Sequence record: NC_042056.1
Reading direction: 5' to 3' (one strand)
DNA length: 64,000 bases
Position numbers and translations under genes: made by a program. The notes beneath the pieces are model-generated. The model was not told the origin of the DNA and did not search any database. It saw only the letters and a program-made list of their open reading frames with translations. This document shows positions 4,027 to 5,828 of the stretch, piece by piece. The first letter of the stretch is position 1. Each line of letters starts with the position of its first letter.

Positions 4027-4113
4027 TCGGAAACCCGATTTGATGTTGCACAGAGCGTTACGCTGCGGCGTTTGCTGGTGTGCAGGGTTAGGTCGGGATT
4101 CTGGCACCTATTT

Positions 4114-4199
4114 GGCGGGTTACTCAAGCGGTCAACGAGAGCAGACTGTAAATCTGTTGCCTTCGGGCTTCGTAGGTTCAAATCCTTCACACGCCACCA
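4114..4199 (+). tRNA. trnY: tRNA-Tyr (GTA)
   Basis: CT-GTA-AA loop, long variable arm and CCA, with one acceptor-stem mismatch. Confidence 0.9.
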
Positions 4200-4205
4200 A
4201 ACAAT

Positions 4206-4425
4206 GGTACCTGTCACAGCAGCCCTTGAGGCTTACGCGATGATGACTGGTCGCCCATTTTACCGGGTAACACATTCCTGCCAGCGCGCTATTGCCGCGA
4301 AGGTTTGCCCCCGGTGTTGTGCGTTATTCGGGTCTACCCACCATCTGCGGATGGTGCGTTGATGTCTCGATATACGCCATAGGGACGCCTTGAGAACTCC
4401 GTGAAATTCGGAGAGGTACCACCCA
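4206..4425 (+). ncRNA. ~220-nt RNA with tRNA-like acceptor stem and T-arm
   Basis: GGTACCT(4206-12)/AGGTACC(4414-20), immediately preceded by CTCCG-TGAAATT-CGGAG; ends ACCCA. Confidence 0.6.
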
Positions 4426-4429
4426 TTCT

Positions 4430-4494
4430 TGTGTTTCCTTATCCTGAAGACATTCCTAAGACAAATTCATTCATGGTCGAGGAAACACAGAACC
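4430..4494 (+). ncRNA. 65-nt stem-loop motif, copy 1
   Basis: 10-bp stem with a 40-nt loop that is conserved with 5563-5629. Confidence 0.65.
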
Positions 4495-4500
4495 TATTCA

Positions 4501-4576
4501 GGTGCTATCGTCTAGTGGCCGAGGATACTACCCTGTCACGGTAGAGACCGGAGTTCGATTCTCCGTAGCACCGCCA
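4501..4576 (+). tRNA. trnD: tRNA-Asp (GTC)
   Basis: Canonical cloverleaf, CT-GTC-AC, CCA. Confidence 0.95.
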
Positions 4577-4584
4577 TTTTCAAA

Positions 4585-4660
4585 TGCGTCTTAGCTCAGT
4601 TGGTAGAGCGCACCCCTGATAAGGGTGAGGCCACTGGTTCAAGTCCAGTAGATGCAACCA
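4585..4660 (+). tRNA. trnI: tRNA-Ile (GAT)
   Basis: Canonical cloverleaf, CT-GAT-AA, CCA. Confidence 0.95.
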
Positions 4661-4667
4661 GTATTGC

Positions 4668-4744
4668 ATTCCCGTCATCTAGTTGGTCCAGGATACGACA
4701 CTTTCACTGTCGGTACACGAGTTCAAATCTCGTCGGGAATACCA
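4668..4744 (+). tRNA. trnE: tRNA-Glu (TTC)
   Basis: Canonical cloverleaf, CT-TTC-AC, CCA. Confidence 0.95.
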
Positions 4745-4749
4745 TTTGT

Positions 4750-4840
4750 AGAGAATTGACTGAGTTGGTTTAAGGTGCTCCCCTGCTAAGGGAGTGTATG
4801 CGAAAGTGTACCATTGGTTCGAATCCAATATTCTCTGCCA
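4750..4840 (+). tRNA. trnS: tRNA-Ser (GCT)
   Basis: CT-GCT-AA, long variable arm, G discriminator, CCA. Confidence 0.95.
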
Positions 4841-4841
4841 T

Positions 4842-5015
4842 GTTCTCTTGCTGTGGGAAATAGAAGCGAACGTAGAAACGCCGGTTAGCTCAAAGCTTAG
4901 AGCGTCTCATCTTCGGATGAGAAGGTTGGGGGCGCAACCCGAAATCCCTATCGGCAACGGCCTGCTTGTCAGGATTAGAAACATCTACGTGGATGGGTAC
5001 TTCTACAGCAAGAAC
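4842..5015 (+). ncRNA. ~175-nt RNA containing a tRNA-like domain with a UUCG-capped anticodon arm
   Basis: 13-bp terminal stem (4846-58/5001-13) and a 7-bp inner stem enclosing a cloverleaf at 4879-4957. Confidence 0.65.
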
Positions 5016-5018
5016 AAA

Positions 5019-5140
5019 ACAGTGGGAGCATTGTCCACTGTGACACCGGCAAAGGTTTCGACCTTGCGGGTTGGGCGGAAGCCCGATGTTCCCCCGAACG
5101 CTGGCCTTCTGGCCAATACAGTGAAAGCTTACCCTTGCCG
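5019..5140 (+). ncRNA. putative structured RNA
   Basis: Several hairpins, two with UUCG and GGAA tetraloops, closed by CGGCAA/TTGCCG. Confidence 0.4.
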
Positions 5141-5221
5141 ATGATCACCTCTTCTGCTGCTGCCAACACACTGTATAACCAGAATCAGTCCTGCCTTAAA
5201 TGGCAAGCGTTCACCCTTTAC

Positions 5222-5299
5222 GTTTCCTCAAGGCGGCTTGGGGTGTTATCTCTCGGCTCTGTTGGGTAACATCGTGGTTCAACTCCATGGGAAACACCA
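5222..5299 (+). tRNA. tRNA-like RNA / pseudo-tRNA without a canonical anticodon loop
   Basis: GTTTCC/GGAAAC acceptor, TTCAACT T-loop and CCA, but a 9-bp arm with a 12-nt loop. Confidence 0.6.
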
Positions 5300-5305
5300 A
5301 ACAAT

Positions 5306-5397
5306 GGCTCCGTAGCTAAATCGGTAGAGGCAGACTTTAATTAGTTCTCCAACGATTTTATAATCGCGTGGTGTAGGTTCAAGTCCTACCGGAGCAA
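5306..5397 (+). pseudogene. degenerate class II (Leu-like) tRNA
   Basis: Acceptor, D-region and T-arm are present. The anticodon arm has a 6-nt TTAATT loop and there is no CCA. Confidence 0.55.
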
Positions 5398-5474
5398 GAG
5401 CACTGCTGTTAAGTTGGTTAACACCCGACCCATACTCGGATATTCGCACGTTCGATTCGTGCCAGTGCTCGCCC
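5398..5474 (+). tRNA. tRNA with CAT anticodon (Met or Ile2), atypical
   Basis: CC-CAT-AC loop (C at 33), 8-bp acceptor pairing, GTTCGAT T-loop; ends GCCC. Confidence 0.7.
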
Positions 5475-5481
5475 TTATTTA

Positions 5482-5557
5482 GACTCTGTAGTTCAGTTGG
5501 TAGAACGGTGGACTGTTAATCCATATGTCGCAGGTTCGAGTCCTGCCAGAGTCGCCA
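5482..5557 (+). tRNA. trnN: tRNA-Asn (GTT)
   Basis: Canonical cloverleaf, CT-GTT-AA, CCA. Confidence 0.95.
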
Positions 5558-5562
5558 CATTT

Positions 5563-5629
5563 TGCATTGCCCGAGTCCCGAATGACATTCCGGAAAAATA
5601 TCATCCATGGTCACGGGCAGTGCAGAACC
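5563..5629 (+). ncRNA. 65-nt stem-loop motif, copy 2
   Basis: 11-bp stem with a different sequence from copy 1 and a conserved 40-nt loop. Confidence 0.65.
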
Positions 5630-5664
5630 AAAATCCCAGCCTTCGCAGAAAAAGCTTACCTGCA

Positions 5665-5784
5665 TTAGCGGTCCCCTGCGGGGGTTGGGTACCACCTTTG
5701 TCCGTTTTGTTTTTTTCTTTCAATTGCCTGGCGGTATTGGTGGGAACAAAACGGGTAAAGCCCTAGCGGGGGAAAAGCCGTTAA
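5665..5784 (+). ncRNA. rod-like structured RNA or 5' leader
   Basis: 16-bp helix 5696-5711/5745-5760 plus outer helices 5665-72/5777-84 and 5673-77/5768-72. Confidence 0.5.
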
Positions 5785-5828
5785 CAACAACAGAAGCAGT
5801 AAAAACAGAAGTAAAAGCAGGAGTAGTT

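Follow-up and report, generated by a model that had tools for sequence, protein, structure and literature searches.

Does the tRNA array of a jumbo phage encode structured RNAs other than tRNAs, and if so, how might they be released and what might they do? This question was raised by a stretch of 64,000 nucleotides (nt) from sequence record NC_042056.1, referred to below as the window, in which an earlier reading made from the letters alone (the sequence-only reading) had pointed out two copies of a 65-nt RNA motif with different stems and a conserved 40-nt loop. The window corresponds to bases 1-64000 of the Erwinia jumbo phage Machina, window and Machina coordinates being identical, and the 2-kb region around both copies was 100% identical to the Erwinia phages Machina and Huxley. 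Machina infects Erwinia amylovora and has a genome of 241.7 kb, in which several RNA polymerase beta-type subunits are encoded. Its tRNA array, defined from ARAGORN, Rfam, and GenBank annotation, occupies positions 4113-5557 of the + strand and comprises genes for tRNA-Tyr, Asp, Ile, Glu, Ser, an odd 'Ile(aat)', and Asn, with tRNA-tRNA spacers of 5-9 nt; both copies of the motif are located on the + strand within this array. Based on the comparative data presented here, we concluded that the two copies almost certainly belong to a real and previously undescribed family of structured RNAs. The unit is a ~70-nt hairpin RNA of the tRNA arrays of SPN3US-like jumbo phages, in which a helix of ~14 base pairs (bp) formed from the RNA's own ends is followed by a CC(A/U/C) tail. 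We put the probability that this unit is excised by the tRNA maturation machinery, namely RNase P, at roughly one half, and the released RNA would then probably act in trans, most likely through protein binding. The parts of the two units and the tRNA that precedes the second are as follows, with scores referring to the covariance model R1 described below.

4426-4495, + strand: copy 1, whole unit (closing helix, folded 40-nt interior, and CCU tail); R1 score 61.9 bits, E 4e-14.
4426-4439, + strand: copy 1, 5' strand of the closing helix, with C4428 bulged; pairs with 4480-4492.
4440-4479, + strand: copy 1, interior; CC 4443-4444 pairs with GG 4475-4476, GAA 4446-4448 with UUC 4470-4472, and AUU 4452-4454 with AAU 4464-4466.
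4455-4463, + strand: copy 1, apical loop, from the folds.
4480-4495, + strand: copy 1, 3' strand of the closing helix (4480-4492) and single-stranded CCU tail (4493-4495).
5482-5557, + strand: tRNA-Asn(GUU) with encoded CCA; called by ARAGORN and by the Rfam tRNA model (76 bits).
5560-5630, + strand: copy 2, whole unit, at the conserved 'end of tRNA array' position; R1 score 97.6 bits.
5560-5573, + strand: copy 2, 5' strand of the 14-bp closing helix; pairs with 5614-5627.
5574-5613, + strand: copy 2, interior; CC 5577-5578 pairs with GG 5609-5610 and AUU 5587-5589 with AAU 5597-5599, around the apical loop CCGGAAA at 5590-5596.
5580-5585 and 5601-5606, + strand: copy 2, inner helix GAAUGA/UCAUCC with one A.C mismatch, present in the minimum free energy (MFE) and centroid folds.
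5614-5630, + strand: copy 2, 3' strand of the closing helix (5614-5627) and CCA tail (5628-5630).

All of the features quoted by the sequence-only reading were found where it had placed them. The core arms of copy 1 (4430-4439/4480-4489) were perfectly complementary and those of copy 2 (5563-5573/5614-5624) were complementary with one U.G pair; both loops measured exactly 40 nt and had the three quoted sequence blocks in common, and both 3' arms ran into CAGAACC. Its stem and loop outline was therefore right, but the stems proved longer than it had stated, being extended outward by three further pairs in copy 1 (4426-4429 with 4490-4492, with the one bulged C) and in copy 2 (5560-5562 with 5625-5627), for a total of 13-14 bp that lead into CC(A/U). 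The predicted folds were more stable than those of shuffled sequences, with an MFE of -21 kcal/mol for copy 1 (z -3.7) and of -26.5 kcal/mol for copy 2 (z -4.1), and in neither case did any of 200 shuffles fold equally well.

To define the family, we constructed R1 from eight cleanly aligned array-end copies, that is, copies in the position of copy 2, using the outer helix alone as the structure. A MAFFT alignment of all copies misplaced the stems of copy 1 and of the SNU29 version, and all sequences were re-aligned to the model instead. Both copies were found at the same places in the phages Parshik, pSal-SNUABM-04, pEa_SNUABM_43, _10, and _6, and for copy 1 orthologues in the same place amounted to five other Machinavirus genomes plus one metagenome contig. 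More distant versions were detected by sensitive BLAST in ChrisDB, SNU4/8, SNU9, Caitlin, Asesino, Stratton/phiEaH2, and SNU29, with partial loop matches in Kwan, Wellington, and SNU11. With R1, members from Machinavirus, Erskinevirus, and Seoulvirus, including Salmonella phages, scored 40-98 bits (Stratton 59.8, Salmonella phage SPAsTU 45.7, and SNU29 40 bits), and Wellingtonvirus versions were weakly recovered at 19-26 bits. Additional members in uncultivated jumbo-phage contigs, among them the 240,413-bp contig L150 at 33.5 bits, were reached through the conserved downstream gene; for this search a single neighbouring protein matched only Machina itself, and an alignment of nine homologues was used in its place. 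The covariance-model search that the sequence-only reading had proposed thus yielded further homologues in related phages.

The family appeared to be confined to this group of phages. A two-block pattern taken from the loop occurred twice in the window, both times at the copies, against 0.00 matches expected from 100 shuffles, and no R1 match was present at E<=1 in the other 182 kb of Machina, so the genome contains exactly two copies, both in the tRNA array. No member was found in 832 kb of unrelated IMG/VR and bacterial loci, where the best R1 score was 21.7 bits, nor did R1 match a Klebsiella jumbo phage outside the clade (locus L137). A looser version of the two-block pattern hit ~119 loci in IMG/VR, of which 80 were tested with R1 with uniformly negative results, and we considered these to be chance matches. 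Likewise, an exact-pattern scan of one genome per species across 185,579 bacterial and archaeal species returned 16 matches, which is about the number expected by chance; all were in unrelated metagenome-assembled genomes and none was confirmed by R1. The sequence-only reading had not recognised the family, and among the 4227 models of Rfam 15 no family matched either copy at the gathering threshold. Copy 1 had no match at E<=10, and the sole overlap with copy 2 at that level was a minus-strand chance match of 11.8 bits to a human long non-coding RNA model. Our searches of the literature turned up neither a description of the motif nor small-RNA data for phages of this clade.

The evidence that the element functions as an RNA came from the pattern of change within it. 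The closing helix, scored on 20 distinct sequences aligned to the covariance model, was 98.9% paired, with double compensatory changes at 7 of the 14 pairs (26 cells), whereas partner-slid controls were 39-64% paired, and the observed covariation was reached by none of 500 shuffles. The helix comprised 13-14 bp in Machina and 12-16 bp in relatives. Copy 2 of phage SNU6, for example, carried a G-C to A-U double change together with a U.G to U-A change, and in three phages an A-to-G substitution in the 3' strand of copy 1 gave a U.G pair that is tolerated on the + strand only. Such G.U pairs, which fit only the + strand, were frequent throughout the closing helix, and R1 scored 12-23 bits on the minus strand versus 40-98 bits on the + strand, from which we concluded that the selected molecule is the + strand RNA and not a DNA cruciform. 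The suggestion that stems of changing sequence around a conserved loop mark a functional structured RNA was accordingly borne out, the helix having been kept by compensatory changes in orthologues as well as paralogues across four phage genera.

The 40-nt 'loop' was itself folded. RNAalifold and single-sequence folds both gave a CC/GG step, a GAA/UUC-type helix, and a 3-bp AUU/AAU helix closed by a 7-nt apical loop, and these pairs were favoured by the comparative data over the inner GAC/GTC pair that had been suggested from the two Machina copies. The inner fold of copy 2 was predicted independently for ChrisDB, SNU9, L140, Kwan, and L147, and the apical loop CCGGAAA was shared by Machina copy 2, ChrisDB, SNU9, Stratton, L144, and Kwan. 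At the middle pair of the GAA/UUC-type helix, 10 sequences had A-U, two had G-C, and three had A.C, and the AUU/AAU helix was replaced by GUU/AAC in Stratton and L144. A second version of the loop was present in copy 1, SNU4, Caitlin, and Asesino; its apical loop measures 9 nt, and it contains an 11-nt stretch duplicated in tandem. The two versions swapped at the array-end position among close relatives. In copy 1 the duplication was detected at 4442-4463 on the + strand (TRF, period 11, 1.9 copies), which suggests that the conserved 'loop' was enlarged by duplication from within. Among Machinavirus orthologues the interior was nearly invariant, whereas the stems and flanks varied. Overall, the outer helix is strongly supported and the inner helices moderately so, and the fold is that of a single irregular hairpin, or a rod of ~23-26 stacked pairs with internal loops when the inner helices are included.

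The array-end position of the element was likewise conserved. As the sequence-only reading had noted, both copies follow a tRNA or tRNA-like 3' end, the helix of copy 2 beginning 2 nt past the CCA of tRNA-Asn and copy 1 beginning 1 nt past ...AGGTACC-ACCC, the 3' end of a 215-nt element described below. On its other side, copy 1 ended 8 nt before tRNA-Asp, which begins at 4501, and it was thus flanked by a tRNA-like 3' end and a tRNA through spacers resembling those between the tRNAs. In Machina, ChrisDB, SNU4, SNU9, Caitlin, Asesino, Stratton, and SPAsTU, the R1 match began 0-6 nt past the CCA or 3' end of tRNA-Asn, and the same distance was found in Kwan, L140, L143, L147, and L152. The element of L150 was preceded by a weak tRNA (30.6 bits) and that of SNU29 by an unannotated T-arm plus CACCA, such that in all of the related genomes examined, except for SNU11, where the flank was unconfirmed, the array-end orthologue stood directly past the last tRNA. 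The tRNA content of these phages was very different, so the array evidently recombines often, and the position of the array-end copy was kept whatever that content was, from 11 ARAGORN-called tRNAs in some phages to three in L140. As for the 3' tail, the closing helix was followed by 0-2 nt and then by CC(A/U/C) in 16 of 18 members, with CCA in 8 of 14 array-end copies. In the Klebsiella phage vB_KpM_FBKp24 (L137 4256-4365), the last tRNA was directly followed by a ~105-nt structure that R1 did not match, with a 7-bp closing helix, TCTCCAT/ATGGAGA, and then ACC; this structure may be an analogous, non-homologous array-end unit.

Placement in what looks like the slot of a tRNA, together with termini that imitate an acceptor stem and 3' tail, makes release by the enzymes that cut the array the most likely route. 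Escherichia coli RNase P cleaves hairpin model substrates consisting of an acceptor stem plus T stem-loop, with the 3'-proximal CCA influencing cleavage, and pre-4.5S RNA, phage M3 RNA, and the C4 antisense RNA of phages P1/P7 are among its other substrates (PMC11143913). The Machina element resembles these hairpin substrates, two of which are of phage origin, in that a helix of acceptor-plus-T-stem length (at least 12 bp) is formed from the RNA's own ends and, in most members, leads into a short CC(A/U/C) 3' tail. According to the mechanism that we propose, the units would be transcribed on the + strand within the tRNA arrays and RNase P would cut at the 5' base of the closing helix, followed by exonucleolytic trimming of the 3' end and CCA maintenance. 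A cut at the helix base would leave the preceding, usually last, tRNA with a 2-6-nt trailer, just as a following tRNA would, and the freed, tRNA-sized RNA would present its conserved upper part, probably to a protein. A processing signal was one of the roles offered by the sequence-only reading, and it is the one that best fits an element abutting a tRNA 3' end and having an own-end helix and an NCC(A)-like tail, with processing itself being predicted. The interior, however, is conserved more strictly than processing would need, and copy 1 is dispensable as a processing handle, which suggests an additional role in trans for the freed RNA, most likely in protein binding. A protein-binding aptamer, another of the roles proposed earlier, is a plausible prediction from the internal 11-nt duplication and from a loop that is more conserved than its stem.

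Several observations weigh against this interpretation. The known hairpin substrates present a 12-bp acceptor/T stack with a T-loop, whereas the present element has a continuous stem of ~14 bp capped by an internal loop, and recognition by RNase P is therefore plausible but not assured. Tests for tRNA identity failed, since ARAGORN and the Rfam tRNA model (RF00005) called the flanking tRNAs and nothing at 4426-4495 or 5560-5630, even at E<=10, in keeping with the single irregular hairpin. The tail is variable, copy 1 having CCU or CCC, SPAsTU and Kwan CCC, and Stratton and SNU11 CAC, and with tRNA-Asp only 8 nt further on, a separate handle at copy 1 is not needed. The inner structure is weakly defined in members with the longer apical loop, and the inner helix of Machina copy 2 contains its A.C mismatch. 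Neither a partner protein among the neighbouring proteins nor a complementary target in the window was found, and the transcription, excision, and stability of the units are all inferred from sequence.

Among the alternatives, the one that survives best is a purely cis-acting processing or insulating hairpin, which we regard as possible but doubtful. On this account the element would mark the 3' border of the array as an RNase III or RNase E site or as a protective 3' hairpin, the tRNAs would be set apart from the mRNA that follows, and the piece cut out would serve no further purpose. The conserved copy is indeed always at the array end, ahead of a conserved leader and gene, more hairpins come after the element, much as in a structured leader, and a rod of 23-26 stacked pairs is of a size compatible with double-strand-specific processing. 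Structural punctuation would have no need of an interior conserved beyond the stem, though, and would leave the conserved CC(A) tail without a role, and there is no mRNA border at copy 1, which lies between the tRNA-like RNA and tRNA-Asp. Nor is the element an intrinsic terminator, because the helix is followed by CCAAAAUCCC in copy 2 and by CCUAUUCAGG in copy 1, neither of which contains a U-tract, and neither copy was listed by the terminator scan. Promoter and terminator scans gave nothing above shuffled sequences; sigma-70 rules are inapplicable to Machina's own polymerases. A related use of structure is described in passages of PMC1920247 for the t-elements of plant mitochondria, which are tRNA-like structures that serve as processing signals. 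As far as those passages describe them, t-elements likewise place a non-tRNA structure with tRNA-like features beside genes, and tRNA-processing enzymes make the transcript ends, but they are cloverleaf-like and belong to another organism with other enzymes, whereas the phage element is a plain irregular hairpin with an interior conserved beyond the needs of a processing handle.

A second alternative, that the element is a decoy or anti-defence RNA, is in our view improbable. Its loop would imitate an RNA of the host (a type III antitoxin, a CRISPR repeat, or part of a tRNA, for instance) and sequester a defence nuclease, and a conserved loop with an internal tandem duplication, on a stem of free sequence, would suit such a protein-binding RNA. 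Passages of PMC11464382 attribute to phage tRNA clusters a role in countering tRNA-targeting defences, and the Machina array is rich in tRNAs with GUN anticodons (Tyr, Asp, and Asn). The sequence-only reading had drawn the comparison with phage pseudo-ToxI and RNA anti-CRISPRs and had pointed to type III toxin-antitoxin and other defence loci as possible neighbours, but neither idea was sustained. ToxI, pseudo-ToxI, and RNA anti-CRISPRs are, like the present element, small structured phage RNAs, and the protein binding that characterises them is predicted here; however, they are tandem arrays copying a host RNA. In Machina there was no array of ~34-36-nt repeats, only two separate units 1.1 kb apart in a 242-kb genome, and PADLOC, Pfam, and PHROG searches with the eight neighbouring proteins returned no function and no toxin or defence match. 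On the motif itself, the Rfam models for ToxI, CRISPR repeats, Y RNA, and tRNA gave no match at E<=10, and the only CRISPR-DR match in the region (17 bits, minus strand, 4720-4760) lay across the junction of tRNA-Glu and tRNA-Ser. With R1 confirming none of the 16 pattern matches, the element has no known host original to mimic. The bacterial Y RNAs (YrlA), described in passages of PMC4201824 as having paired ends that form a long stem, as mimicking tRNA, and as occurring in some phages, share with our element this pairing of 5' and 3' ends. The motif differs in having no tRNA-like domain and no Ro60-type protein among the neighbours tested, and the only match to the Rfam YrlA model in the region was a weak one at 5444-5506, on tRNAs.

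Still less probable is a base-pairing small RNA of the kind exemplified by C4 of P1/P7, with the loop pairing to a phage or host mRNA. The design is C4-like, a small phage hairpin with paired ends of a type that RNase P processes (PMC11143913), and the loop is conserved and exposed. Against this, the longest complementarity to either loop was 9-10 nt, a chance-level value, on both strands of the window (the host and the rest of the genome were not searched), and the two loop versions, with their different centres, swap at the same position, which sits poorly with a single fixed target. The Rfam models for C4 and for the small signal recognition particle RNA did not match the motif at E<=10. 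Finally, that the element is a DNA-level site (a cruciform, or a recombination, replication, or packaging site), a decaying tRNA remnant, or coding sequence we consider very unlikely. In favour of these readings, the array recombines often, the GenBank coding sequence (CDS) gp19 starts at 5607 inside copy 2, and copy 1 has a 3' strand similar to the 3' end of the 5222-5301 tRNA-like element. In a cruciform or on the minus strand, however, many positions that are G.U on the + strand would turn into A.C mismatches, and a decaying remnant is hard to square with conservation in four genera. Selection maintains pairing, not codons, with gp19 of relatives starting downstream past non-triplet insertions and deletions and the ATG reading frame of copy 1 running into tRNA-Asp.

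Returning to the tRNA-like excision that we favour, the closest known systems are similar to the element in design but not in sequence, and we class the element as a new family within a general kind that is already known. The T4 RNAs RNAC and RNAD are encoded beside tRNA genes and are about twice as long as the present element. Both are discrete small RNAs distinct from tRNAs in a large virulent phage, and are described as 'of yet unknown functions' (PMC9697503). By that description, not by sequence, the Machina element would be alike, a non-tRNA small RNA of a large phage, but its family is restricted to SPN3US-like jumbo phages. A murine gammaherpesvirus encodes a tRNA-like unit followed by stem-loops that are freed by a tRNA 3' processing enzyme. 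The layout of tRNA and then hairpin is similar, but the parallel is conceptual only, because the virus infects a eukaryote, the enzyme is another one, and the hairpins enter a microRNA pathway that bacteria lack.

The motif was not the only structured unit at this locus, which is a series of units with paired ends and an NCC(A) tail, of which tRNAs are only a part. The additional units, all on the + strand, are as follows.

4206-4424, + strand: 215-nt conserved structured element with tRNA-like ends, directly before copy 1; no Rfam or ARAGORN call.
4880-4958, + strand: tRNA-like cloverleaf whose 'anticodon' arm is a 7-bp stem capped by UUCG; no usable anticodon; unannotated.
5222-5301, + strand: tRNA-like cloverleaf with a 10-bp central arm and an ACCA end; no usable anticodon; unannotated.
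5399-5470, + strand: tRNA(CAU)-like gene, 38.9 bits against the Rfam tRNA model; absent from the ARAGORN and GenBank lists.
5634-5694, + strand: hairpin H2, directly 3' of copy 2, ending ACCA-like; RNAalifold, nine phages.

The 215-nt element, between tRNA-Tyr and copy 1, has a 5' GGTACCT that pairs with a 3' AGGTACC, a T-arm-like hairpin ahead of that 3' strand, and an ACCC tail. Six Machinavirus genomes retain the element, an internal hairpin of which shows compensatory changes, and it may represent a second undescribed RNA family. We also considered whether this element and copy 1 are a duplicate of tRNA-Asn plus motif, and rejected this because the element had no meaningful similarity to the tRNA-Asn of ChrisDB or Machina. 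On the other side of the array, H2 covaried more than the motif did, with compensatory double changes at 12 of 21 pairs in the nine-phage alignment. A third helix at 5696-5760 on the + strand, an inverted repeat with 16-nt arms that are 88% complementary, precedes the conserved leader and the next gene; it uses a U-rich run, which is therefore probably not a terminator tail. The same 13-nt junction (CACCA, an AACAA spacer, and TGG) occurred on the + strand at 4195-4207 and 5295-5307, at two boundaries between array units, which suggests duplication of array units including their spacers. Elsewhere in the genome, at 179263-181538 (L179 19264-21536), one of two adjoining genes specifies a DEDD-type 3'-5' exoribonuclease-like protein (Pfam Rv2179c-like, E 1.4e-12) and the other an RNase H-domain protein annotated 'ribonuclease' (E 1.4e-19). 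The former could have a part in trimming the 3' ends of array RNAs, and nothing links it to the motif.

Two coding annotations overlapped these units. In the Machina, Huxley, and Parshik records, CDS gp16 (4848-5144, + strand) overlies tRNA-like RNA. For gp19, the additional stretch at 5607-5828 on the + strand begins at an annotated ATG at 5607, inside copy 2, and the relatives start at the ATG corresponding to 5829, which follows AGGAG; their homologues begin 160-290 nt downstream, with intervening insertions and deletions that are not multiples of three. The gp16 and gp19-start annotations in these three records are therefore probable errors, and two CDS calls of Machina would be corrected as probably lying over RNA.

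These results bear on how the tRNA clusters of phages are understood. Such clusters are usually read as tRNAs plus junk spacers and small hypothetical open reading frames, but in Machina one spacer is a covariation-supported RNA family that spans four jumbo-phage genera infecting Erwinia and Salmonella, and it is adjoined by at least two more structured, tRNA-ended RNAs. A more speculative idea, and one we think rather unlikely, is that the motif is a 'hitch-hiker' RNA, borrowing acceptor-like ends so as to be excised by the host's tRNA-processing machinery while its apical module captures a specific host or phage protein. Candidates for this protein would be a defence nuclease that targets tRNAs, or a factor involved in RNA traffic or translation in these jumbo phages, whose genomes specify multisubunit RNA polymerases of their own. 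If this were true, the motif, H2, and the 215-nt RNA would make the 'tRNA array' a production line for several non-tRNA effector RNAs. The element is a concrete, small, and presumably abundant candidate for studies of RNA-protein interactions in jumbo-phage infection. If the units are released by RNase P, tRNA arrays would be a general expression platform for phage non-coding RNAs, and RNAC and RNAD of T4 would gain relatives in design.

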